From: Camelus dromedarius
Taxonomy: Eukaryota
Assembly (NCBI RefSeq): GCF_036321535.1
Contig: NC_087454.1
Span: 17,422,001-17,486,000 of the forward strand
DNA: 64,000 nucleotides
Direction: 5' to 3'
Below are positions 3,253 through 61,584 of this stretch, piece after piece. Each line of letters starts with the position of its first letter. Positions within the stretch are counted from its first letter, which is position 1. The position numbers were made by a program, and so were the translations under genes. The notes below the pieces were generated by a model. The model did not search any database and was not told the DNA's origin. It saw only the letters and a program-made list of their open reading frames with translations.

Positions 3253-3885
3253 TTACTTCTTGGTTGCCCTCCTAGAACTTGATTTCTGCTGGGTCAACTT
3301 CGGATTCCCAGTTTTATTAAGATTCCCTGCCCTGGCCTTTGCTGGACTCTTCCGTTGTTGTTTGGCCTTCGCTCCTTTCGCTTTCCTGCCGCTCCGAGCC
3401 GCTTTCTGAGCCGTTGTTGCCCTAGGCTTTTTAGCGGTCTTGTTGCTCTTGGCACTCTTTGGAGACTTCACGTCTCTAGATAAGACCAGCTTCTTGGCCT
3501 TGGAAGAAGCAGGCTTTCTAACCTTGGTAGGCTCAGGAGCAGCCTTTCTACTGAGCTTGAAAGAGCCGGAGGCACCAGTACCCCTAGTCTGCACCAGTAT
3601 CCCCTTAGTCACCAAACTCTTGAGACCCAACTTAATACGGCTGTTATTTTTCTCTACATCATAGCCCGCGGCTGCCAACGCCTTCTTCAGCGCGGCCAGG
3701 GACATGCCAGCTCTTTCCTGAGACATCGAAAGGGCCTCGATGATCAGCTTGGACACCGAAGGGTTTGTAGTCTTTCGACTCGCACCCATCAAGGCAACCG
3801 GCTTCCTGCCTCGCTTCTTAACCGGAGGTTTTTCCATGGGAGCTAGAACCGGGTCGGCTGGAGCCACTGGTGCTGTCTCAGTCAT
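3253..3885 (-). CDS. H1-6: Testis-specific linker histone H1t, 210 aa
   Basis: First ATG at 3885 (MTETAPVAP); the ORF-track extension starts at GTG; H1 globular domain [28 protein letters not shown] with H1t-type features [32 protein letters not shown] and LTQQ. Confidence 0.93.
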
Positions 3886-3950
3886 TTCACCACACTGAAC
3901 CAAACGGTAGTGCTCCGCAGGGACCGTAAAATGCCGCCGGGCCACAGGGC

Positions 3951-8349: not shown

Positions 8350-8533
8350 CATAATTGTATTTGTTTACTAATTTATTTCCATTTTAAAAAAAATACTTAT
8401 TTCAGTGCATTAAAGCCCAAATGCCTGTGTTTACAAATTAGTAACTAACATCTATCACACCAGTCATTTCAGTAAATCCAACAATAAAAGTGGTACATTG
8501 CAATCATCAATATTCTTATATCCTGTCCTACAG
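8350..8533 (-). other. Candidate distal non-coding terminal exon of H2BC4 (spliced, polyadenylated isoform)
   Basis: Minus strand: 120-nt AG-free, mostly pyrimidine tract (8655-8536), CAG| acceptor at 8536-8534, AATAAA at 8377-8372, downstream TGTGTTT. Confidence 0.55.
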
Positions 8534-10059
8534 CTGAGTTTGTAGGGAGATTATAGCAGGGAGAAAAAGTGAAAAGAAAATAAAGGAAAAGAAAAGAGAA
8601 GAAGGGAGAAGGGGAGGAGAAGAGGAAGAAAAGAAAACAAGAACAAAGTTTTATCCTCATTGCTTTTGAAGCCAATTATTTTACTGTCGGAGAACTTGAT
8701 TTGCTTAGAAGACAAGTTTAGGGCCATGAGTGATGAGGTCAAGGTTTTACCCCAGTATTGTCTCCTGAAGTATTTCGGTGTTCTTATAGAATGAGACAAG
8801 CCCCATCATTTCTGTTCCTTCATCCGTTGGAGCCTGCAGCTGGATGGGGCTCTAATACCACCAATACCCATAGCAAGATGAAACCAGCTTTTTCTATCAA
8901 TTATTATGCAAATTGCTTATTGGGCGATAATGCTATGTAAGTCTTTAAATGAAATAATCAAAGTCTCATTTTCCTCCCTCAGAACTGAAGTGGGACAGTA
9001 AGAAAGTAGCTGATTCTCCAGATTATCTCTTTTTTCTAATTTATAATAAACACCTAATTCCTGAGGATTTGTCCAGCTGATTTTGAGAGTCCAAAGAATG
9101 TAGTCAGACCCTAGAATGTCTTGCTGGCAAGGTCACAGGCAGCTGTGTATTTGGCCCAACTTATTTTTATGCTTAGTCATCATCCAGGATTGCACAGGGT
9201 GAAAGTTTGGAAATGCTAACTAATGTTTAATGCTTTTCAGGTTAGGACTCTGGAACTCCCTGGCAAAATGCTGACTACACACCCTTCTAAATCTGAAAGG
9301 CTCAACAAAAGATAACTATCATCCTTTATTTCCTTAGGTATATGTCTAGAGCTCTAATTAAATATGAGTGGGGAAAAAAATGCATTTGCTTTCAATCTGT
9401 TGGACCAAGGTAAAATCCATGGAATCAGCTGGCGATCTTTTCATATCACTCGTGAAATTCCTATCATTTAAGGAAGACTAGCTTCTACCAAGGTCTTCAG
9501 TTATGAGCTGCCATAGGTCCCTTTAGGGTATTAAGAAGGTCATAAATGAAACTTTTCAAACATCACACAACGAATGAGCACCCACCAGCTGCCAGGCACT
9601 CCAAATTGTGTTCTATGCATTAAAGATCTTTGATCGTCACAAACATCTAGAAGATAGGTGCTATTACCATCATCTGCAAGATACAGAAGAGGCAAAGAGA
9701 GATTACTGACTTGACTCAGTCTCACAGCTAATAGTTGACAAGCTGGGAGTAAAACTTGGAGTTCCTACCTCCAGAGGCTACACTTTTGTCATCAAGGAGC
9801 AATGCTGTACAGCCATTTAGCTGACATCATACCATTTCTAGGACAAGTATTTTGTATTTGCTATTTCATTTAACCCTCACCCCATCTTAAACAGTAGGTA
9901 ATTATTACCACCCACAGACTCAGAGTGGTAGGTTTGTCAAACAATAACTCAAAGACATTTAGTTAATTATTAACACACTGTTTATTGTGTATAAGGTATG
10001 CCAAACAATTGATTGATTACATCCAAACACAGTAAAAAAAAAAAAAAAGATAAGATAAT

Positions 10060-28934: not shown

Positions 28935-29010
28935 GGGGGAGGGTATAGCTTGGTGGTAGAGTGCATACCTAACATGCACAAGGTCCTGGGTTCAATCCCC
29001 AGTACCTCCA

Positions 29011-38904: not shown

Positions 38905-39561
38905 ATGTCCGAGACTGCGCCCGCCGCACCAGCTGCTCCGGCCCCTGCCGAGAAAACGCCAGTGAAGAAAAAGGCCCGTAAGTCTGCAGGTGCAGCGAAG
39001 CGTAAAGCGTCTGGGCCCCCAGTGTCCGAGCTCATTACCAAGGCTGTCGCCGCTTCCAAGGAGCGCAGTGGCGTATCCTTGGCTGCGCTCAAGAAGGCGC
39101 TAGCGGCTGCTGGCTACGACGTGGAGAAGAACAACAGCCGCATCAAGTTGGGTCTTAAGAGCCTGGTAAGTAAGGGCACCCTGGTTCAGACCAAGGGCAC
39201 TGGCGCCTCAGGTTCTTTCAAGCTCAACAAGAAGGCAGCTACTGGTGAAGCCAAGCCTAAGGCCAAGAAGGCGGGCGCGGCCAAACCCAAGAAGCCCGCA
39301 GGAGCTAAGAAGCCCAAGAAAGCGACTGGAGCAGCCACCCCTAAGAAGAGCGCCAAGAAGACCCCAAAGAAGGCGAAGAAGCCTGCTGCGGCTGCAGGAG
39401 CCAAAAAAGCAAAGAGCCCGAAAAAGGCAAAAGCAGCCAAGCCTAAGAAAGCACCCAAGAGCCCAGCGAAGGCCAAAGCGGTGAAACCTAAGGCGGCAAA
39501 ACCAAAGACCGCCAAGCCCAAGGCAGCCAAGCCAAAGAAGGCGGCAGCCAAGAAGAAGTAG
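38905..39561 (+). CDS. H1-4: Linker histone H1.4, 218 aa
   Basis: Complete [32 protein letters not shown]...[10 protein letters not shown]; ARKS motif; nearly identical to human H1.4 as recalled. Confidence 0.96.
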
Positions 39562-40297: not shown

Positions 40298-40890
<593 letters not shown>

Positions 40891-40927
40891 NNNNNNNNNN
40901 NNNNNNNNNNNTACACCTAATCTCAAG

Positions 40928-40969
40928 GGCTCTTTTAAGAGCCATGCATGTTTTCAGTAAATGAGTTGT
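40928..40969 (+). terminator. Histone stem-loop and weak HDE of H2BC5
   Basis: GGCTCTTTTAAGAGCC at 40928-40943; AAATGAGTTGT downstream. Confidence 0.88.
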
Positions 40970-43304
40970 ATCCTTTTATTCCAAAGGCGATTTTTCAGAT
41001 TTGTCCTGCCAAATTCTAAGCTCCACTACCATTCTTTAATGTTTTAATGTACTTATGGAGGAAGTAATTGTAGGAAACCTAGACAACGTGCCATAAACTG
41101 CGCGCTCACTACGGGCAAGTACAGTCCCATAGAACTATAAATTATGTAGTATCACATAGCCAGATACTAACTTACACTGAAAATGCCATTTCAAGTGTAC
41201 AGCTTTCCTTTCCGTGTGTAGGTCTACAAGTTGATCCTGCCTTTGATCCCGGATTTGGCGATCACCGCTTACTCAGAGCACAAAAGCATGCTCTGACTAC
41301 TTCATTCTGCTCAGTTTTTCTTTTCCGTTTTTCTTCTCTTTTTCTAAGTATATAGACATGTGTTTCTGAACAAAAAAAGGCTGAAGACAATGTGAGTTAT
41401 CACAGAAATAATTATAAAGGGTTTTCTGGTTTGCTTTCTTGAAAATTGGTCCAATTTTCGCTGGAGGCTCTGAGCAGCGGGTGGGGGAGGTGGGGAAGGA
41501 GCCTGTGCTCCATCCTAAAGGCACCGAGGGAGAAGAACGGGAAGCCTTCTTTGACACGCCTTCCAGTCAATCTTGTCAGTTACTATACTTTCATTCTCTG
41601 AAAGTCCTAATCAATTTATAGTCCTTCGGTAGCATTCAGATTTAAGGTCCTCAGGGTTACAAGACAGAAACCCACTCCTCAATCCGTTAAGATGTCTTGA
41701 CTCAGGACTGACGCCCCCTTTACAGCACCGTTTCCTCTTTCCCGGATGTCCCCGAGCATTGAGGGAGGAGAGGAAGTAGAAAGGGAAGAAAAGCCCCTTC
41801 TGGCTGGATGTGGTTTTACTGCACGATGTAGGATAGCTTTAAGGGTGTTCGCTGCTGGAACAGATTTGTGGGGAAGTTAAATCTCTGGAATCTCGAAAAA
41901 GGGGCTGGGAGGGAGTGGCCTGGAGGAAAGGAATCAGTGGTCAGAGGTCACCAAGAAAACTGCAAAGTAGATGAGGCTGGAAAGGGAGGCAAGTGCTGGT
42001 TGAGGTGGAGAGTTTAGAAAGGGGGTGTTGTTGTCTAAGAGAGGAATGAATTTAGAAACCCTAGGGTTTGGGAGAAGGTGAGAACCCTAAACAGGTGCTC
42101 TGGATCACGGAGATAGATTTTCCATAATAGGGCAAGTGGGTACTTGGATGGACAATTAAAATCCAAAATAATACTTAAATTTACAAAACACTGTGAAGAG
42201 CCACTATGAAATAAGGAACTCTCATTCCCAGGTGCTTGACCCAGGGAAACCCCAAACACCACAGCTAGCTTTCACCCAAACCTGAGCTTTGATTTTTAGA
42301 GTGTTATGTGAAGCCTGTCCGTAGTGGGGAGCATGATAAGGACTCTTTCCCACTGAAGCTGAGACACTAGACCAAAATGAACTAGAAATAAACACTCACA
42401 CACTCACCATAGATGATTGCAAAATCTGCCCTGACCCTTGGTGCTGAACAAGGAGATTCCACCACTGAGAATTTGGCCTATAAGCCAGCGTTCACACGCA
42501 TTTCTTTCAGCATTAATACCACAGGGATTCAAAGCACCTAGGCTGAGAATTTAATATAGAGATAACCCCGACTGGTTTAGTGCCCCTGAGCACCTGGTAA
42601 AAGCAAATACAAGTCCTCTCTCGAAGAATAAGCTTCATTTTAGGCCTCCACAGATAAATATCAAAAAGAAAAAAAAAAATGAGCAGTTTCACAACCAAAA
42701 TTAACCAGAAACACCATGAAACAAGTAACCATGACCAAGAGCAATGAACTATGAGAAAAAAGCTAACATAAAAATTTATTTAAAATATAGGTATTGAAAC
42801 TGATGATTGAGAAATACTAAAAAAATTACAATGTTTAAAGTGTAAGATAACTGATTAAGAGTTAAAGAAGAATCTAAAGAATTGAGTCATGAAAGCTTAT
42901 AAGGAGATTCTTGTGTGTCAAAATGCCCTAGTAAATTGTACCATGGCACTAGTTTTTTATTTATAAATGATGGTAAGAGTACTTACATGTCAATTCATTT
43001 AAAAGATAATCATTAACTATCTCTGGCTTAGTCATCTATATGGACACTGGTGATTCAGAGAAACATGGTCGTCCTTGACTTCCTGAAACCCTCAAGTTTG
43101 TAAGGCTGTCAAGGAAGCTTAGACTTAACTGCTTTCATATTCCTTTATCTTTCAATAAGAACCAAAAAAGTGTTTATCACTCTTTGCAAATCTACAGGCA
43201 GGTAAACAGATGGGCTTCTATGGGAACTACCAAATTCATTCAATGAAGGCGATAAAATTCATCCCAATTTTTGAGTAATAAATATTATACAGTAATATTA
43301 ATAC

Positions 43305-43915
43305 TATTGTGACACAGTGCAATGCTTAGGAACAGTCCATAAGACCGCACTCACATCTGACACCAACTGCAGTGTTCAGAGTTCTCTCCAAAGCCACCCT
43401 TGGATTAGATAATTTAATAGAAGGACTCACAGAACTCACCAAAAGCTATTATACTCAACGTTAGTGTTTATTAGACCAAAGGACACAAAGCAAAATCAGC
43501 AAAGGGAAGAGAACATGAAGCAGAGTCTAGTCATTTGCCAGCGGAGTTATGGAACGTTAACAACACCTCCCTGCAACAATGTGTGACAGCATAATGCATA
43601 TTGCCAACTAGGGAAACTCACCTAAGCATTTTATGAGGCCTTTATCACGTAGACACGATCGACCACCTGAGTGGCTGATCTTGAGTCTCCAGTTCCTCTG
43701 GAGGTAGTACAGATACAGCATGGCCTAAAGCCCCCAACATGAATGATATTATTCCACTAGTCCATTAGTGGAATATGGACCTATGATCCTATTAGCTCAA
43801 GGCCTCCTGGTAAACAAAGATATTCTTAACATGCATTCCAAGGGCCTAAAAGTTACCTTCCAGCAAAGGGCAAAGGCTAAACCTCTTTCGATAAGGTTAA
43901 TTCTGAACATAATCA
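43305..43915. mobile_element. MER21-like LTR
   Basis: cataagaccgcactcacatctgacaccaactgc...ggactcacagaactcaccaaaagc...aaaatcagcaaagggaagag. Confidence 0.6.
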
Positions 43916-45208
43916 TAAGAAAATATGTAAGTATGACTTTTTTTTTTCCAATTTTGAACTATATATCTATCAGTGACCATAACTTGAGTTCTACAACTAT
44001 TTGCTTTTTTATGATTGTACTATCACATAGTTTTGTATATTTAGGTCACCTGTGGACCTAGAGATTATGAGATTTCTGATGGAAGACAATTTTTCATACT
44101 TTATTCAGATGAACAGCATCAGCAGTCTTCTTGATTTGTACTCCCAACTGCCCTCCAAACCCTAGGTGCAGGAAAAGAAGACTTAGGAAGGGTGAAGGTC
44201 AACATTGGGGGAATGTGGGTATTCTTCACCTTCATGTTGGTGGCGTGGGCATTTAGTGCTACATAGAAGAAAAAACTCAGTTTCTTGACATGAAAACAGC
44301 ACTTGACTTTCCTTTTCATAAACGATGAAATCTGCTGCCATGCACAGAGAACAGGAATTGTAGAAAAGTAAAGGAGTTATGCTTTAGGATTTTATTTAAG
44401 TTTTTAACAGTGAATGTTAAGTTGTGTTTTATAAATACAAAACAAGTATCCCAGCCAAATTATGGGTATTTTTTAAGAAAAGAAGGAGGAGGATCATGGG
44501 AGAAAAAGAAAGGTGAGAGAAATTGAGGACTCAGAAAAAGTATGGAAGAAGTAGACTGCTACTACAGAAGGGAGAGAAAGGGCCTGGAGACCAAAGAGAA
44601 GCCTATAGCGGACTGTGATGGGAGAGAGGCAGGAAAAGAAAAGAGGGAGATGGCTAGATTGACCTTATGATATATTTAGTATTTTTGCCAGGTATAAGAC
44701 TTGCAACACAACTGAAATATTCTCCACATTTCTTGGGTTTTCGGTTGACTGAATTGATTAAAATGGTATATCTGGGAGATGTTCTCTGACCAGTAGATGT
44801 AAAATGTCACCTCTCTCTTCACATTTTTTAACTTGCTCTATTCATTCTTCTTCATTATACTTAGTGCTAATTGACATAAATTTATTTTTTGTTTCCCTTT
44901 CCCATTGTCAAGACTGTTAATCTCCATTGGGGCAGGGTTAGTATTTTTTACCACTGACTCTGTAATACCTTGGCTGTTCCAGACACAGACTAGGCTCTCA
45001 GTAAGTATTTGCAGCACGATGTGATGAATTAATTGAAATACATATATGTCTATAACAATAAAGATAGAGCACAGGGCTGATTTTTGAGAATATTCAACTG
45101 AATGAGTGACTCAGCCTTTCTGAGTCTCACTTTCTTCATCTATAAAAGGAGAATAAAAATCATACACTACTTAGAGTTATTTTAAGGACTAAGATAATTT
45201 ATGTAAGG

Positions 45209-45335
45209 AGGGGAGGGTATATTGCTTAGTGGTAGAGTGGGTTTCAATCCCCAGTACCTCCATTAAACAAACAAACAAACAAACAAAGAAACCTAATTAT
45301 GCCCTCAAAAATTAAGAAGAAAAAATATTTTTTAA
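45209..45335 (+). mobile_element. tRNA-Ala-derived SINE with internal deletion
   Basis: ggggagggtatattgcttagtggtagagtg-ggtttcaatccccagtacctccattaaacaaacaaac. Confidence 0.75.
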
Positions 45336-45807
45336 AGTTTAACAAAAATTGAAACCGTTTTTTTTTTTGTTTTTTTTTTTTTGTTTTTTTTTAAGAAGAG
45401 ATCATTTGTGTAAAGCTCTTAAAAAGTTATGGACATTTAGTAAGCACTTGGCAGTTGTATTTTCCTTAGTCACTAAATTAAAACGAAAATCAGAGAAGCT
45501 AATTCTTTTCAGATCAAAAATTAAGAGAGAGAATATAAGCTTTTTATCTATTTGAATTCTACCCCGAGGGGTAATTGGGGGATTTGGAACAAAGATTACA
45601 TTATTGAGGAATATCTCTTGACTGAGTATGATTTAAGTCATTATCTGTTCATGTTAGTAATGACTAAAGTGTGCATAACACTGGAGGGGAGATTCCTTGT
45701 AGCACATTATACAAGCATATGTAAACAGATCCCTCTTCATTGTGTAGCAAATATTAGTGCTAATGGCAAAATGGCACCTAACATATAAACCTTTTTTATT
45801 TCTTCAG

Positions 45808-46205
45808 TCAGGGGAGCGATATGAGTGCAAGAAGAACTGAATGCAAGCAGAAAGTGAAAATGAGAATCTGGCTAGAGAAGTTATGAAGTATGATGTCCAA
45901 TCTGCCTGAGATGATTGATTAGTCTGTATATCCCACACAAATCCTATCCATCTGATTTACTGCACATTGATTTATCAAAAGGTGATCATTACCTGAGTGG
46001 AAGAGCATAAACAAGGTGTTTTAGCTTTTTCATTGTATTTATATTTGAATTAAAGAAATAGAATTTACTTCTGTTACAGGCCTAATTACAGGAATTCACT
46101 ACTTACTGTGGACTACCTACCTTTGCTGGGGAAAGCCTGAATGAAAGGATGGCAAGACATCTGTAAATGAGATGCTATAATTAATAAAATCTGTGGATAA
46201 TTGGA
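45808..46205 (+). other. Candidate distal non-coding terminal exon of H2BC5 (spliced, polyadenylated isoform)
   Basis: Branch-like CTAAC 45778-45782; pyrimidine tract ccttttttatttcttCAG| ending at 45807; AATAAA 46183-46188; U/GU-rich sequence downstream. Confidence 0.7.
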
Positions 46206-46402
46206 ATGCTTCATTCATTGTTGATTCAAATCCTTCTCCTAAGATCTCTCCCCCTTCTAGACATACAATTTATTTATTTTTTCATTTTATTTTTTGGTAT
46301 TAATTTCTCAGTAGATAAGTCCTAAGTGCTATTTTGCCTTTGGTAACAATCTTGAATCAAACGAGTTAGTTTAGCTAAGCTGACATTTGAGAGGTCACCT
46401 TC

Positions 46403-46780
46403 TGTTGCCAAATCCTGTTTCCTGTACCCTGGTATCTAATCAAGGCTCAGAGACACAGAATTTTAGGGAAGAGGAAAGAATAGCTTTATTTCTTTGCCAG
46501 ACAAAGGGGGTCACAGTGGGCTACTGCCTCAGGAGTGCGAAGCTGGTTTGGGGAAGAGTTGTGGGGAGTTTTATAGTGAAAATCCAAGGAACAGTGCTTG
46601 GAATAGGACGCAGGGCTGCATTCCTTCCTTCTTTGATACAATCACAGTGGTAAACGGTAATCTGGTGACAAGGTCTTCTGTTCCTGGCAGTGAACAAGGC
46701 ATATCTCCTGACATTCCTGTGCCTGGAACAAAGGAAAGGAAGGGGTGTATATGTTGGGAAAAGAAAAAATACGTGCAGTT

Positions 46781-46838
<58 letters not shown>

Positions 46839-46919
46839 GCTCAAAAATGTCTCAGAGTGAGAAGCCATTTGAGGTTACCATTAAGTGACTATAACCACTG
46901 TGCCCACTGTGCGGTTGCA
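46403..46919 (-). mobile_element. ERV1-type solo LTR with 4-bp TSD
   Basis: TG...CA termini; TSD CTTC at 46399-46402 and 46920-46923; minus-strand AATAAA within aatagctttatttctttgcc. Confidence 0.75.
46783..46834. repeat. (AC)26 microsatellite inside the LTR
   Basis: Uninterrupted AC run. Confidence 0.95.
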
Positions 46920-46957
46920 CTTCAACATCCGAATTAAGTGGAACACAGTATTTTGAA

Positions 46958-47163
46958 GCAGTTTCAAACTTAAGTGTACGCTAAAATCACCTGAAGGATT
47001 TTTTAAAAAGATCGCTTTGAGATCACTCTGAGGGCCCCACGTCACAGTGTTCTGATTCACTGCAACTGGAGGAGGACCCAATCATTTGGATTTCTAAATT
47101 ATGAAGGTGATGCTGATGCTGATGCTGCCGGTCCAGGGATAACACTTGGAGAACTGTGCTTTA
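46958..47163. mobile_element. MER5-like hAT-Charlie element
   Basis: aaaatcacctgaaggattttttaaaa...ttctgattca...ggtgatgctgatgct...cacttggagaactgtgcttta. Confidence 0.6.
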
Positions 47164-47289
47164 GGACATGGGGTTTCCCTGAGATGATACTACCAAACAG
47201 CTGCACAAAACCGAAAAAACACATTGAGGTTTAAACTGGAAGTCAGTACTGAAAATTAGTACCTCCTCCCGGTGCGGCCATGCTGGGGT

Positions 47290-47750
47290 GCAAAGTACAA
47301 AGTGGGCCCTACACGCCCCGCCTCTGCCGGCTCCTAGTAACCAAGGCCCACACGCCGACTCCCTCATTGGGCAGTCCTGCCACGCCCCTCCATGCCGGCT
47401 CCCTCATTGGGCATTCCTGTCACGCCCCTCAATGTCGGCTCCCTCATTGGGGCGTCTCGCTCAGCCACGCGTCCCTCCGCTCCCCGCAGAGCCGCAAGCT
47501 ACGTATACACCGGGTAACGCCATTCGCGCTCCTCCACTCCGGCCTGCAGTTTGAACCCGCGAGGTTTCCCTGTGGCCGCCCCTGCTAGTGCGCAGACTCT
47601 GCCGACGCAGCCTCTCTCTTCTGGCAACCACAGGACGCCGGAGAGTCCGAACGATGCGCTGGGTCATTCGCAGATAAAGACACAGAACCGAGCAGTCTGA
47701 AGACCAAGAAGCAAGGCAACAGCCCCCCTCCTCACCCCCTCATTGGTTTT
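47290..47750. promoter_or_regulatory. Orphan CpG-rich promoter-like element with CCAAT/GT-box repeats
   Basis: High CpG density; ATTGG at 47366, 47406, 47446 and 47742; CACGCCC boxes; no adjacent histone CDS. Confidence 0.6.
47355..47451. repeat. 40-bp tandem repeat, about 2.4 copies
   Basis: ccgactccctcattgggcagtcctgccacgcccctccatg / ccggctccctcattgggcattcctgtcacgcccctcaatg / tcggctccctcattggg. Confidence 0.9.
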
Positions 47751-48363
47751 TCTCCTCCTCTCCCAACTTTTTTCTGAGTTGCCATTTCCTTCATAGCTAA
47801 TCCCCGGGAGGCCTGCCTTGCACCACCTCTGCTTATTGTCAGCACTTTTATCGGGCACTTTGTGTGAGTATTAAGTGCGTGTATACGTGGATGCACGCAG
47901 AGCCTGCATCCATTAGGCATAGCGGACACAGGGTCTACGACCCAGAGTACTTTTAGAGGCTCGCGAAGATACTTGAATTGCTTCTAAACTTTTAGGTCGA
48001 CGGAAACATTCTAATATATTGATGTTTTGATTTTTATATAATTTTAGTAATAATATCCTTTTTGTTATTATTTTTATGGAGGAAGGGATCCAGAACGGCA
48101 GATGCGCAGGACCCACAACAGATAATGCAGACTTGAGTGCGGGTAGCACGGACCCGTTTTCAGTTGTTTCTACTTAGTTAAAAAAAATTTTTTTTAATGG
48201 TAAATAAACACCCAGGCAAATTTTCAAGTGCTTTCTAGATGTTAACTCGTTTAATTCCCATAAAACATCTGTGAACTGTTATCCCAGCTTTACCTGCTTG
48301 TATGAATTACCCAAAATTCAAAATAATTTACCCAATGTTACCCAGCTAATATATGGCAGAGGG

Positions 48364-48503
48364 TACATAGCGCAGTGGTAGGGTGCATGCTTAGGATGCG
48401 CAAGGTCCTGGGTTCAATCCCTAGTATCTCCATTAAAAAGTAAGTAAATAAATAAACATGATAACCTCCCCCGGCAAAAAAAGAAAGAAAGATATAGATA
48501 CAG
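48364..48503 (+). mobile_element. tRNA-Ala-derived SINE with 13-bp TSD, inserted in a MIR
   Basis: TSD atatggcagaggg at 48351-48363 and 48504-48516; tagcgcagtggtagggtgcatgcttaggatgcgcaaggtcctgggttcaatccc. Confidence 0.85.
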
Positions 48504-48769
48504 ATATGGCAGAGGGAATTCTAACCCAGCCTGGTTAGCTCCAGGGTCCCTGACCTAAAAACCATTACACTAAAGATACTATCTTGAGATACCTCTAAAC
48601 AATTAATCCAAAAAAACAGCAGGTAAGATAACCACTTAACTCTAGACAGGCTACTCTGAGCCCTCTTCTCCACTTGGCCTTTAACAAAGTTGAACAAGAC
48701 TTGAACACTATTATACTGCACTAGCATACTTTGTAACAGCTCAAGGCCTAGGATGACCCCTCTTACAAA

Positions 48770-51239
48770 GCCTACCCCAAGTCAAGACCTATTCCTTTTA
48801 TCTTTTTCCTTTTCTGTTTTGTCTTTGTTAGTTTTTTAAGAATCATCTTGACTATTTTTGCTCATCAACATGAATTTTACAGTGCTTTATCAAAAAATCC
48901 AGTGAGTCTTTGTGGCATAACATTGAAATTTTAGGTTATTTTTAAATGTATGGACATTTTAGCATATTGAGACATCCCCAAACATAAAAATAGTCCAGCA
49001 TACATCACTTAATTTAGGTGAGTCTTGTTTCATATCCTTTAACAGCACTTCATAGTTTTATTCTTAGAGATCTGCAATACATTCCCTTGGGCTTAGAATC
49101 CTTAGAATGTGTTGTACTGTTGTGAATGATGTCTGTTTTATTTATTTCAATTCTAGATAGATCATTGCTTGCTAATGTATAGAAAAGGCCATGAATTATT
49201 GTTTTGTGGTGCGCATTTATTCACCAACCCTGTTGAGCTTATTAGAGATAATTGTTTATAGCTTCTCCTGGATTTTTTACAATGACATATTATTTTCAAA
49301 GAATAAATATAACATCTTTTCTTATTGAATTCTTACCCTTCTCATTTCTAGTCCTTGTCTCATCGTTTTGGCAGAACCCTTGGTGCCATGCAGAATAGGA
49401 GTGATACCACGGAATTTTTGTCTTTCTTTTGGCTCTTTGGGGAGTCTTCTAAAATTATACCATTAAATGTTAAGCTCACTGTAGCTACTCCTTATGAAGT
49501 AAGTAGCTACTACTTCTCGTTCTAGTCTGTTGAAAAATGTTTGTGATGAAGGAGCATTATATTCTAGCAAATACTTTCCCAGTATCCTTGGAGATGATAA
49601 CAGTTTTTATCTATTAATATCTTAAATTTGTGATGTAAAACACATGGAAGCATTCTTGGATAAACCCTACAAGACATACTATTGTTTTTTAAACAGTTTG
49701 GTCTCTTGCTTTCCATTTGTTTACATTTAAAATAGAGATTTATTTATTTATTTTTTTTAATTTGTAAGTAAGATGAGGCTATAATTTTCTCTCAATCTGT
49801 TTCTTTGTGTGTGTGTTGTTCCTGTTTAGTTTAGGTGAAGTTATAAAACTTGAGAAGAAAAAAAGGATAGCTATTTTTCTATTGAAACAGCTTATGTAAA
49901 ATAGGGATTATCAATTACTTAAATTTCACTAAAACCTATAAAACCCAACTTTGCTTGGAATTCTTTGGGTTGAAGAATATAGGAAAGATACATTTTTAAA
50001 CCCCCATCATATTTCCTTAATCATACTTTGTTTTCTCAGCCTATTCTTCTTCTTGAAATTATCGTTTTCTATTAAGAATAATGTTTTTCTAAAGATTGTT
50101 CATAGCATTCTCATGATTCTTTCTATCTACCTTTTGGTAGCTAATTTCCCTTTTTTATTCCTATAACTTATTTTCCCCTCCCTCCCACACACTTTTTTTC
50201 CTTAACTAGTCTTTCTAAAGGTTTGCCTATTATCATGAGACTTTTCAAAGAACAAGCTTGTGATTTATGGATCATCTCCATTTTTTCTATTTAATTAATT
50301 GTTCCTTTTAAATTTCAAAAATTGACATTGAGAATAATATGTCAACATACAAATCCATGAGAACCTATAAACAATTAGATCTAATAGAGCTCAACAGGAT
50401 TGATGGATAGATGAGAACCACATAAAAAATTATGGCCTTTCTGTACATTAGCAGAGACCTATCTTGAATTGAAATAGAAAAACCAGGCATCATTCACAAG
50501 AGTGCAACACATTCTAAGAATTCTAAGTCCAACTTTATCTGCTTTATTTTGATTTATTCTCTTGTTCTTTTTCTAGCTTTTTTTTTTTGATAAATACCTA
50601 TTTCATATGTCTTTAGTGTTTCTTTTCCTTCATACATACGTCTAATATTGTATATTTCCATTTCAGTACCACTTCTGATACATCCTACAATTTTCACATG
50701 TATTATTCTCATTCATATTTGTCTCAGAATATAAGTTTCCCTTAATGATATTCATTCTAATCCATGAAATTTAGAGGTGTGCTTTTAGTATCCAGTAATA
50801 TGGGAAGATTGTTTTAGTTTTACTATCTTTAAAATAACCTTTTTTTTTTCTCTTTAATTAGACGATGAAAAAGAGTACAGTGTTTATGAAACTGATTCTT
50901 TGGTATCTATTGTAACTTTTTCTAAAACCAAGGTTGAATTTTTGAAATGATTAAATATGTGCTTTCCAAAATTGTTTATTCTCTACGTATTAAGTGCAGG
51001 AATCATAGATCAAGTTTACTCATTGTGTTGTTCAAATATTCTGTAACCATGCACATTGTTCTTTGCTTGTTATGTGAATTTTTGAGTAGTATATTGAAAG
51101 TTTACCCTACAATCATAAACTTGAAGTTCCCCCAATTCTGTCATTTATTGCCTTACGTAGTGGTTGAGTGGTCAGGTGCATACAAGGTCTTGAATGTTAC
51201 ATCTTATCAGTACATCTTTATTTGGTCACCGTGGAGTGT

Positions 51240-51271
<32 letters not shown>

Positions 51272-51400
51272 TTTCTAGAGGTTCTGTTTTGTTATTTTTT
51301 GATTACCCTACTTAGATTTTCCCTTGTTCCTTGATTGTATTATTCCATCTTTATTTCTTTAACCTTTCAGTAAATAGTTACCTTACTGTTTCTGATCATT
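48770..51400 (-). mobile_element. Degraded old L1 fragments
   Basis: T-rich L1-like antisense sequence (cattaaatgttaagctcactgtag, ttttcaaagaacaagctt, aagtgcaggaatc); boundaries rough. Confidence 0.5.
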
Positions 51401-53089
51401 TCAATATTTGAAATTCCTAGGAGAGAGCAAGGGGATCTAAGGCTCCTGTTTATCTGAAAGCCTGACTCTCCAGTGTCTGTTTTCCTCTTCTGTTTGTTAC
51501 CATTTATTATAAGCTTATACGTGGTAATCCCAAGTTCCTAGTAGAGTGCCTGGTAAGTAATAGGTGCTCAGTAAATAATTGCTGAATAAATAAATCACAA
51601 TCTGTATGAATCTAGAGAACTTGAATTCAAGATGCTTCCCTCCTGAAGGGGTTTACCTTTGCCTTCACAGGGCACTAGGAGGCGCTCTGAACCTACATCA
51701 CTAATTTCACAACCCTTTCCTTGAAACCCCAGATTCTATGTAAGTGGTTAAATCCCAGTGGCAAATTTCCTCTGTCCTCCTCCACAGAGTTCTGCGGAGA
51801 CAGACAGGTTTTCTTCTTGGGAACCTTTGCTAGATTAACCTTATTGTAACCTATCCTTTCTTCCAGGGTCCTGGGTTTAGTTTAAGGGTTTCGAATCCCC
51901 TTCCCCAAGGAGCAGATATTAATTGACAAAGTTCAGAATCTTGATAATAATAGTTGCCCCAGAGAACCCAGTCTAGTGTGTTTATCTCTCTGGTTTCAGC
52001 GCCTAGGTTTTTCATTGCTTTGCATATTTCAAGGCATTTTCTCAGTTTCTTCTTAGCTGGGCAATGATGTGCTACTGTTTTGTTGTACTTTATCTGGTCT
52101 TTAGGTGTTTTCCTTCAAGATGGCTTTGTATCCAGAATATCTTGTTTTCTGTATTGGAAATAAGTTTTTACAGTGTCCCTCTCTATCCCTAATACTTTTA
52201 GCTTAAAAATGTGTCTGCTATTAATATTGCTAACTTGCTCTCGGTAAACATTCCCCAGGCATGTGTTCCTCTCATTCTTATTTTTTATTTATTGTTATTA
52301 TATAAATATATGCATAATTTATCTTCATTCAAATAAGAGGAGCACTTTTAATGCATATTTTTATTACACATATTCTTTTGCTTTATAAAAAAATGTAACC
52401 ATCTAAAAGATAAACTACTGTACCTATGCAAGAACTCTAGCATATACTTTTCTGAGGGAGACAAAAGAAAACCTATAAAACTTCCAGGTGACCACAATCA
52501 TACAGGACAATAACTAAGCATATATTTTATTTGAGTTAATATCTACCCTTATTTTGGAGTTACATTTTTTGTAATCCTAAAAGAAGAAATCACTGTTATT
52601 GAGTCTGGAGACAATTCATATGGGGAAATTATTTAATAAAGAGTGTGGTAGTCAATTTTGTTTTAAAATTAACAATCCTGGGGACTAGGTAACACCTTTC
52701 ACCTCTTTGTCAAATGATCACTGCCTCAGAGGAGTTTAGAACAATTGGGATTCAGGAGCTTTGCCTAGACAGACAATTTTCATGGTATCCAACATATATT
52801 TCTATAAATAATTATATTTCATTAATTTCACTTAATAATACACTAAACATAAAACCAAATGTGTTTAATATTTTACTTTTTTTAAAAAACCAGACCCAGC
52901 AAGATTTAAAGGAGATGTCTTTAGTTGTAACTAACATTATTGACCTTTAATCTGAGCCTTGTGATCCTAGAAAATAGTGATTATTAAAGAAATTCTCCCC
53001 CTTTTTGTATTCCAAAAATAATTTACTGCAAGGAGGCACTGTTTTCACCTATGATTTGGAAAAGATAAAAAAAAAAACAACTCCTGGTT

Positions 53090-53194
53090 GGAAGGGTATA
53101 TAGCTCAGTGGTAGAGTGCCTACTTAGCGTGCAAGAGGTCATTGGGTCAATCCTCAGTACCTACATTTAAAAAAATAAATTTAAAAAACAACAG
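53090..53194 (+). mobile_element. tRNA-Ala-derived SINE
   Basis: gggtatatagctcagtggtagagtgcctacttagcgtgcaagaggtc...; flanking caactcct duplication. Confidence 0.8.
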
Positions 53195-53224
53195 CAACTC
53201 CTTGTATATCTAGGACACAACCAG

Positions 53225-53660
53225 ACACAGACCCCTCCCAAATTCCCATTCTTTGCCTCAAAAGTGATAACCTGAACTAATCCATGGAAACAATATACTT
53301 TGTCAACCAAAATTTAGTTACATTTTCTCTATCCCCCCAGGTCCCAGAGCTTTGACCCACCCTCAGCCTGAGCCACTTTACTACCCCTCCTTAAGGGTCC
53401 CTTCTGATAGTTGGCTGGACTCGGGGTAAAACATTATCTGTTTTCCTAATATCTAATCAAGCCATTTTTTCATCCTACCATTCCTATGTCATACTCAATT
53501 CTTTTTAGTCTTGTTTGCTCTTCCCTAAGAAAATCTGTTTTGGCTTCAGCCAAAGAGAAGCTTACAGATCATATGCAGTAGTCCGTTTCACCTCCTATCA
53601 ACAGTCCTTTCAAAAATAGCCTCTCCTTACCAAGTCTGAATCTTTTTCATTTAAAACAGC
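53225..53660. mobile_element. ERV1 LTR fragment (MER34/MER39-like)
   Basis: caggtcccagagctttgacccaccctcagcctgagcca...ggactcggggtaaaacatt. Confidence 0.4.
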
Positions 53661-55770
53661 TCATGGACTATTTTGTCTGCCCTGTACACTGTGTGTGTTT
53701 CTACTAAATTCATGTAGGTATGGAATGAACACTCTAGTTTGGGTCAGTCCTCACCACTCTTCAGTGTTATATAGATCTGTTCACCTGTGTAGAGGTTATA
53801 GCCTCTATTCATGGTTACTACATTTAAATTAGTTGCCTGGTCCTTTTGAGACAGGATGGAAGGGGGCAGGGCACACCCATTAAAAGAATAACACAGCAAT
53901 GAGCACCAAGATGGCCAAAGATTCAATTCCCAGTCGATCTTGAGGCCCAAGATAGTAGAAGATTTGACTTCCAGCAAACCTTGACCTTCATTATATGCTC
54001 ATTTTGCAATAATAGCATGGTAAAGGGCACTCCCATAGACATTATAACAGAAATTTTGGGGTGAAATTTCATAGGTTGGCTGAAATATGAGTAAATTTAG
54101 AGAAATCGTCGACCCTAAAATTATTGGGTATTGACTTAACTCTACAGCTTTGGCTCTTAATCAGTGGCTTTCAACTTTATCTATAATGGAAATATATCAA
54201 AATCTTAACTAGTAAATTAATAAGTTGGTGATATGGTGAAGCTAATATCAACTAAAAATAGATAAAGCTAATAGCAATCACTGAATCCTTCTCTCTATGA
54301 TTTACATTATCTATATTTTGTCTCTCCAAAATACTGTCTCATTCTCCAGATAAGTTTCTCTTTTTGCCCCACTCTTCCCCATCGGCCTCTTTTTCCACTG
54401 AGTCTTTTTCTCTCCCTCTCCGCCTTTTCCATTTTTTCTTTAATCTAGTTGTAATTTTCTTTCTCATTTTTCTCTCTCCTCTTCCTCCATGGACTAGGTA
54501 TATAAGAGAATCAACGTTTTTTTTTTCATTTTAACATTCTCCTTCAGTCATTTAAAAAATGCTTTATTTGCCATGCTTCTAAAGTTAGAAGAAATCACAA
54601 CAAACTTTTCTCTTTTTTTCCTAAAACAGCCCACCAAACGCCAGCGGGAGTCTTATGAAGGATTCAGATTTAAGGCAGACTGCTTTAATCATTATCCTGG
54701 CTCCACAATTTACATGTTAATGGGATTTGAGGGAAAAGGCCTTGTCTCATGTTCTCTGGTTTTCTTTTCTATAAAATGGAGGGCAAAAAACAAACACAAA
54801 CAAACAATCAGGTAGGGTTTTATGATTAAATAAAATAATACATATAAAGCATGTTAGCTATTATTCCAAACATTGCTACACGGGCTAAATTGGGGAAAAG
54901 TAAAAATAAAAGAGTGAATAGGTCTTCAGGAGATTTCCTCCTCAATACCAAAGTGAGAAAAACAAATTAATTACTTTGTGCCCTTTTTGTTTGCCAGCTT
55001 ACCACGTGCAGCTTGCAGCCCTGGATTTACTGCCAGCAGGGGAAGCCAAAAGGTGGGGCAGCGTAGAAAGTCTTAGAAACATCTAAATCAAATTCAGGGG
55101 AAACAGGTCTCAATAGAAAGGAAACATGTTAATGGAAGAACTAGCTAAAAAGCCGGTTTCTGATAGTGATAATAGTAAATTGTAAATAAAAGTATTTATC
55201 ACCATGTTCTCCCGTTTCAGTTGTTTTCTGGGGTTTTTGTTTCTGTTTTTAACTAAGTAGAAGGAAGAGTAATTTCTGATCCGCTTTAGTGGCTAACCTG
55301 GATGTGATTTGATCGTTTCCAATACGAAGCACTGCAGCGATACTGGCTACGAAATTCTTGCATTTATTACCTTCCTTTAAGCTACGTAACTTTAAACTTT
55401 GACATTTATTTTCACGCTATATTTCTACATTTTTGGTATAGTTGGAAACACTGTCTTAGGAATTTTTTCGATTACCGTAGATCGCCTATTTCTTCTCAGT
55501 TCTTCCTTTCCCTGTCACTAATCTAGAATCTGGATTCAAAGGCAGAGTGACAGCTTTTCTAGGAGTTGTAAACAGGCCTTGCAAATCGGAGAGATAACCA
55601 GTCCATGAAATCTGCCTTTTTGATATTTCAGAATACTGTAGAGAGTGCTATCTAGTTTATATCCTTAACAAACTAATCTGAATTGTTATAAACAACTACA
55701 GAACTTTTAAAATAATTTAACTAGATTAAAGTAGCTGGCCTGATTGCTGGAAAACTGTCTCAGGAGATAG

Positions 55771-55886
55771 CCAATGGGAGGGCACTCCCCTAGTTATCTT
55801 TTGCATGCATACCTCTTAACAAATGAACGAATCAGCAGTTGCCGAGTTAAGGCCTCATTTGCATAATACTGCCTACAAATAGGCAG
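55771..55886 (+). promoter_or_regulatory. H2BC6 promoter
   Basis: CCAAT 55771-55775; canonical octamer ATTTGCAT 55857-55864; TATA-position variant TACAAATA 55874-55881. Confidence 0.78.
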
Positions 55887-55930
55887 GGTCCTACAAAGCG
55901 GACACCATTTTGTCTGTGAAAAAGCAGTAG

Positions 55931-61163: not shown

Positions 61164-61584
<421 letters not shown>

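Follow-up and report, generated by a model that had tools for sequence, protein, structure and literature searches.

A downstream exon in the dromedary histone cluster is probably the camel counterpart of the polyadenylated terminal exon of human H2BC5

A spliced and polyadenylated variant of human HIST1H2BD (H2BC5) mRNA was reportedly described by Pirngruber in 2009. The initial annotation of the camel DNA considered here referred to such an isoform, and the literature bears this out: human HIST1H2BD gives rise to a spliced, polyadenylated mRNA by way of a second exon located downstream of the histone gene (Kari, 2013, PMC3661734; Lyons, 2016, PMC5100578). In this transcript the splice donor follows the stop codon and precedes the stem-loop, so that splicing takes the stem-loop out and the mRNA is spared nonsense-mediated decay (NMD) (PMC3661734, PMC5100578), and some 10 nt around the donor are reported to be conserved across mammals (Lyons, 2016, PMC5100578). 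Cow Hist1h2bd is expressed as a spliced poly(A) mRNA, and the mouse gene is a pseudogene (PMC3661734, PMC5100578). Poly(A) sites of human HIST1H2BD have been placed at hg18 positions 26266834, 26279217, and 26279551 (Hummon, 2012, PMC3281783); the principal one is at a distance of some 13.2 kb from the start site, another is found at about +0.5 kb, and there are two RefSeq variants (PMC3281783). Primers that flank the HIST1H2BD splice site have also been published (Hummon, 2012, PMC3281783).

The DNA analysed here, a stretch of 64,000 nucleotides referred to below as the window, represents the mammalian major histone cluster of Camelus. Its genes (Table 1) are arranged in the order H4, H1t, H2B/H2A, H1-4, H2B, H2B, H4, which we take to be that of human H4C3, H1-6, H2BC4/H2AC4, H1-4, H2BC5, H2BC6, and H4C4, and the H2B that starts at 40511 therefore occupies the H2BC5 position. 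Judged by gene order, this gene is the H2BC5 (HIST1H2BD) orthologue, a replication-dependent H2B directly 3′ of H1-4 and separated from the H1.4-type gene by a spacing of 0.95 kb. The rest of its coding sequence beyond the readable 5′ part is masked as N (40649–40911), and the stop codon is predicted at 40886–40888. In a second Camelus assembly (GCA_048773025.1), an identical H1.4 protein is encoded at the locus, the sequence 3′ of the stem-loop is 99.4% identical to the window, and the public gene table gives for the H2BC5 locus only a 381-nt H2B gene. The tRNA-derived SINEs of the window are likewise of camelid appearance.

Comparisons were made with H1.4 loci and their 10-kb flanks from pangolin (L003), bear (Ursus, L004), and bat (Rhinolophus sinicus, L005). 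The H1–H2B arrangement is common to camel, pangolin, and bat, and the bear locus differs upstream and aligns downstream; in bear (L004, 475–12059), but not in camel, an H2B and an H4 are found no more than 10 kb upstream of the H1 that precedes the H2BC5-like gene. A Bos mutus ‘H1.4’ locus (L002, 1640–16092) was rejected for comparison as it carries a different H1; the protein concerned (P0102) is positioned after an H2B and an H4. Separately, linker-histone and H2B domains are fused in the public gene models P0007, P0008, P0054, P0117, and P0119, one such fused model being a 337-aa Camelus dromedarius ‘Histone H2B type 1’, and these are probably mis-merged H1–H2B neighbours. A tRNA match (RF00005, 37 bits) is located at 28939–29010, in the region without genes that separates H2A from H1-4.

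Table 1. Coordinates of histone genes and of the proposed H2BC5 processing signals in the camel window.
Feature	Position	Strand	Basis or remark
H4	starts 979		gene order in window
H1t-like gene	3253–3945	minus	
Divergent H2B/H2A pair	~13.4–14.5 kb		
H1.4-type gene	38905–39561		
H2B at H2BC5 position, readable 5′ part of coding sequence	40511–40648	+	ORF translation
Expected 5′ splice donor interval, ~9 nt after stop	40889–40911	+	predicted; camel letters masked
Histone 3′ stem-loop GGCTCTTTTAAGAGCC	40928–40943	+	RF00032 match
Candidate branch point CTAAC	45778–45782	+	sequence
Pyrimidine tract ccttttttatttcttc (45790–45805) and tandem AGs (45806–45807, 45810–45811)	45790–45811	+	
Proposed terminal exon, all 3′ UTR; start 45808 or 45812, 3′ end approximate	45808–46205	+	
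Internal acceptor-like motif tttacttctgttacag, first exon base 46080	46066–46079	+	conservation
UGUA upstream of poly(A) signal	46162–46165	+	
Poly(A) signal AATAAA	46183–46188	+	in conserved block GATTAATAAAAT
U/GU-rich downstream element	46190–46230	+	largely conserved; cleavage expected near 46200–46210
Second H2B	starts 55937		
H4	61164–61526	minus	

The donor of the putative camel isoform would fall in masked sequence, and its likely position can be read from the orthologues. The H2B 3′ UTR of both pangolin and bear contains CAA/GTAAGC (the slash marks the splice position) 9 nt past the stop, and that of bat contains CAC/GTAAGC 8 nt past the stop; in all three species this GTAAGC is situated ahead of the stem-loop, and no other GT in that interval comes close to it. 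A camel donor is thus predicted from these sequences to lie at 40889–40911. Since the predicted camel stop is only 39 nt from the stem-loop, any camel donor located before the stem-loop would be within the NMD-safe distance of 50–55 nt. The stem-loop itself scores modestly, its RF00032 match (40923–40968) reaching 29.2 bits where the gathering score is 34; the corresponding values for four other histone genes of the window are 35.7–40.1 bits, and two further ones are likewise under the threshold. Its 3′ flank follows the pattern ATGCA...AAATGAGTTG, as against ACCCA...AAAGAGCTG in the neighbours. A weak processing signal at H2BC5 would favour read-through, although this is only suggestive because two other genes of the window are also sub-threshold. 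Directly 3′ of the stem-loop (40944–40961), camel reads TTTTCAGTAAA, and the human counterpart, taken from a published non-poly(A) reverse primer, is TTTTCAATAAA. The human sequence thus has AATAAA after the stem-loop, at the proximal poly(A) site, where camel has AGTAAA, and because of this difference the proximal site (at about +0.5 kb in human) may be weaker or absent in camel.

A terminal exon had been proposed by the initial annotation about 4.9 kb downstream of H2BC5, and the sequence signals on which that proposal drew are all present, the acceptor being located 4.87 kb beyond the H2B stem-loop. They comprise the candidate branch point CTAAC, a complete 3′ splice site with a pyrimidine tract and a CAG that ends at 45807, AATAAA at 46183–46188, and after it a U/GU-rich tail (tctgtgg...ttgttgatt). 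The roughly 400 nt between acceptor and tail were described as unique, and blastn within the window, run up to 40545 and from 40912 onward, indeed found neither a second copy of 45808–46205 nor any paralogy between it and the rest of the window. That first reading had passed over a second AG at 45810–45811, which provides an alternative first exon base at 45812, a conserved internal acceptor whose first exon base would be 46080, and a TTTATT in the pyrimidine tract that constitutes an AATAAA on the minus strand.

Taken alone, the splice and poly(A) signals are at chance level. Acceptors were scored with an approximate matrix, the frequencies of which follow published compilations, and of the 988 AGs found on the plus strand from the stem-loop to the following H2B (40944–55900), the acceptor at 45808 ranks 19th and that at 45812 ranks 8th. 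When the 15-kb intergenic region was searched for an acceptor this good with an AATAAA 150–1000 nt downstream, 12 such pairs were obtained on the plus strand and 20 on the minus strand, and about 6 ± 3 were expected from first-order Markov simulations. The 12 plus-strand pairs against some 6 expected speak for a reading in which the stretch is a look-alike, namely neutrally evolving DNA between genes that carries splice and poly(A) motifs by accident, and in which the sequencing runs that contain it (see below) represent DNA or read-through noise. Further evidence comes from conservation, from published human primers, and from RNA-like data.

Bat and bear are colinear with camel over 40925–47430 and beyond, and pangolin can be aligned only up to 42881. 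Within this alignment, the block from 45391/45516 to 46400 has an identity of 76% in bat and 72% in bear. Conservation is not higher in the exon than around it: identity across the three species is 0.62 both in the exon and in the 390 nt that precede it, and 0.56 downstream, and exon-specific constraint is therefore not detected in this comparison. Such a lack of excess over the flanks is as expected for a weakly constrained 3′ UTR exon; it also suits a chance origin of the motifs, against which stands the block GATTAATAAAAT with its AATAAA, identical in camel, bat, and bear. The UGUA 17–20 nt before the AATAAA is also kept in bat and bear. At the 5′ border, CTAAC is retained in bat and is CGAAG in bear, and the pyrimidine tract is retained in both. 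The camel CAG at 45805–45807 is CAA in bat and bear, so that the upstream AG (45806–45807) is an extra feature of camel relative to these species, whereas the AG at 45810–45811 is kept in bat (TTAG/GGG) and found 2 nt further on in bear (TATAG/GAG). The ancestral acceptor may for this reason correspond to 45812, with camel having gained a second AG 4 nt upstream. Either acceptor would be workable because the exon is untranslated.

The same alignment bears on whether the exon could be real and yet have other borders, beginning either at 46080, which would make it 126 nt long, or at a site upstream of 45558, which would make it longer. The motif TTTACTTCTGTTACAG/G, which would make 46080 the first exon base, has hardly changed between camel, bat, and bear, representatives of three orders; it ranks 48th of 988 AGs in camel, 23rd of 571 in bat, and 8th of 574 in bear, and in the latter two species it scores like 45808/45812. 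It is possible that this motif (46066–46079) serves as an alternative 3′ splice site that would produce the 126-nt exon. For a longer exon it can be said that the alignable block begins at 45391–45516, not at 45808; however, the candidate AG at 45510–45511 is lost in bear. A shorter exon is at odds with published human primers, since the reverse primer of the junction-flanking pair and the Pirngruber amplicon find their counterparts at 45876–46001, upstream of 46080, and the human isoform must by this mapping at least start before the position equivalent to 46080. We regard other borders as improbable, and 45808 or 45812 is retained as the start of the proposed exon.

Those primers, the Pirngruber poly(A) forward and reverse primers and the Hummon reverse primer for the poly(A) variant, were used as probes standing in for the human exon itself. 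In alignments that include small gaps, the reverse complement of the Hummon reverse primer is placed at camel 45876–45889, the Pirngruber forward primer at 45938–45961, and the reverse complement of the Pirngruber reverse primer at 45977–46001. All three are thus found in the expected order, sense, and spacing within 45876–46001: some 65 nt of exon precede the Hummon junction-flanking primer, and the quantitative PCR amplicon of the Pirngruber pair is about 65 nt long. When primer scores were summed over windows on both strands of about 8.6 kb, the orthologous window was the top one in bat (z 4.2) and in bear (z 3.9), two species that are not independent of each other, and in bear the forward primer is matched with only 4 mismatches. 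In camel the summed score has a z of 2.4 and is not that of the top window. That three independent published primers for human exon 2 land in order is difficult to reconcile with a fortuitous set of motifs, and from this correspondence 45808–46205 is very probably orthologous to the human HIST1H2BD poly(A) exon.

A second camel position for the human exon, 48521–48540, matches the Pirngruber forward primer with 4 mismatches and agreed with the position scaled from human. It was rejected because bat and bear put all three primers in 45876–46001, and the match is regarded as due to chance; it presumably lies in a MIR-like element. This element (48215–48600) is split by a tRNA-derived SINE at about 48355–48505, with an apparent target-site duplication atatggcagaggg.

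The proposed exon is represented in public sequencing data. At least 95% of the sampled words of 45808–46205 are contained in each of 20 RNA-like runs from 16 studies, of which one is registered as RNA and a second is labelled RNA-Seq in its library entry, the classification of the rest being guesses. That only one holding run is on record as RNA leaves room for the chance reading; however, several of the holding runs are very small (7–30 million letters), and because data sets of this size are unlikely to hold a given unexpressed 398-nt piece of a mammalian genome, they argue for expression over genomic coverage. Taking these data with the primer order and the invariant AATAAA block, we consider it very improbable indeed that the stretch is a chance look-alike. 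Exact look-ups of small open reading frames in and around the exon found nothing on record.

A wider word-share search covered 45558–46780 (1223 nt), consisting of the exon with 250 nt on its upstream side and 575 nt on its downstream side. Among the matches listed, the shares fall at 0.51–0.57, 0.72–0.79, and 0.87–0.95; RNA of the exon alone would give a share of about 0.33, and runs at that value fall outside the matches listed. Since the RNA-like runs have shares of 0.51–0.93, the contigs reach past the proposed exon borders on one side or the other. The clusters fit the exon accompanied by intron reads, a longer exon, or a minus-strand exon equally. Six runs hold 0.51–0.57 of the region (among the matches listed), and the exon with the whole 250 nt upstream would give about 0.51, as a longer exon predicts, although intron reads in deep runs can also supply the upstream words.

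A further reading is that the RNA here derives mainly from the minus strand, by transcription from a CpG-island promoter at 47290–47870 into a terminal exon that would have its acceptor at 46722 and its poly(A) site near 45775, with AATAAA at 45801–45796. A 948-nt minus-strand exon of this kind predicts a share of about 0.77, and six runs have shares of 0.72–0.79 (among the matches listed), the contigs being without strand information. On either strand of the 15-kb region, no acceptor scores higher than minus 46722 (15.7), three CCAAT boxes in minus orientation are present just upstream of 47300, and GAAGAAATAAAAAAGG on the minus strand runs into GU/U-rich sequence. Nevertheless, bat and bear lack camel 46400–46920, which includes this acceptor and (CA)n, bat reads CATAAA at the minus-strand hexamer, and the human poly(A)-exon primers map in the plus-strand sense. 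We therefore think it unlikely that minus-strand RNA is the main product, although a minus-strand exon may coexist with the proposed plus-strand one. An arrangement in which the H2BC5 exon takes part in a sense–antisense overlap of 3′ ends, its acceptor pyrimidine tract being the complement of a minus-strand AATAAA used by a CpG-island transcript with the insertion-derived acceptor at 46722, appears quite unlikely; if it were true, convergent transcription could influence production of the H2BC5 poly(A) isoform.

Several features of this region may be recorded in their own right. The segment at 46400–46920 (about 520 nt) that the bat and bear loci lack contains a (CA)n run at about 46785–46840, and the top-scoring acceptor of the intergenic region (minus strand, first base 46722) is part of it. 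In the CpG island, CCAAT/GC-box repeats occur three times, with CCAAT on the minus strand; the island aligns to bat and bear at 62–66% identity, and a strong plus-strand donor, TGT/GTGAGT, is found at about 47864.

On balance, the stretch is probably orthologous in camel to the H2BC5 poly(A) exon already known, a reading in which we infer the donor, the junction, the RNA strand, and the site of cleavage. The proposal of a terminal exon for a spliced, polyadenylated H2BC5 isoform like that of human is in this way supported by gene order, the literature, the order of the primers, and the conserved tract with AG, UGUA, and AATAAA. To call the exon hidden, as the initial annotation did, was an overstatement in that it has already been described in human and cow. 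In the reading favoured here, the H2BC5 transcript would be cut after the stem-loop at 40928–40943 during S phase, whereas in arrested or terminally differentiated cells stem-loop processing would fail and the polymerase would read on. The donor predicted a few nucleotides past the stop could then be spliced to the acceptor at 45808 or 45812, which would remove the stem-loop together with an intron of about 4.9 kb, and the non-coding exon of about 400 nt would be cleaved and polyadenylated some 15–25 nt past the AATAAA at 46183. The protein would be unaltered, and a junction about 9 nt past the stop would be too near to it to trigger NMD.

Compared with human H2BC5, the camel locus has the same position directly after H1-4, a donor placed after the stop and ahead of the stem-loop (read in bat, bear, and pangolin and predicted in camel), a single proposed downstream non-coding terminal exon with AATAAA, and, inside that exon, counterparts of the human exon-2 primers. 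It differs in scale, which counts against the correspondence, the main poly(A) site or exon end being 13.2 kb from the start site in human and 5.7 kb in camel, where the intron would be about 4.9 kb. The location of the terminal exon would improve annotation of a gene for which the public table has the H2B coding unit alone, and with the comparison there are three more examples, all laurasiatherian, in which donor, acceptor, and poly(A) signal are conserved. The known mechanism is left unchanged.

Among other histone genes, cow Hist1h2bd and mammalian Hist1h2bc (H2BC4) share with it the replacement-type expression of a replication-dependent H2B from which the stem-loop is spliced out (Lyons, 2016, PMC5100578). 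The spliced mRNAs of Hist1h2bd and Hist1h2bc are both reported to be conserved in mammals (PMC5100578), the camel example being predicted here from sequence. The exon proposed for H2BC4 (8350–8655, minus strand) has no detectable sequence in common with 45808–46205. HIST1H1C, HIST2H2AA3, and HIST1H2AC likewise represent alternative 3′-end formation of replication-dependent histone genes outside S phase; they differ in that the stem-loop is kept, the transcripts being unspliced or spliced after the stem-loop and some of them NMD-sensitive. The mechanism proposed for camel is thus one already published for human and cow, and the camel exon is most likely a known kind of feature.
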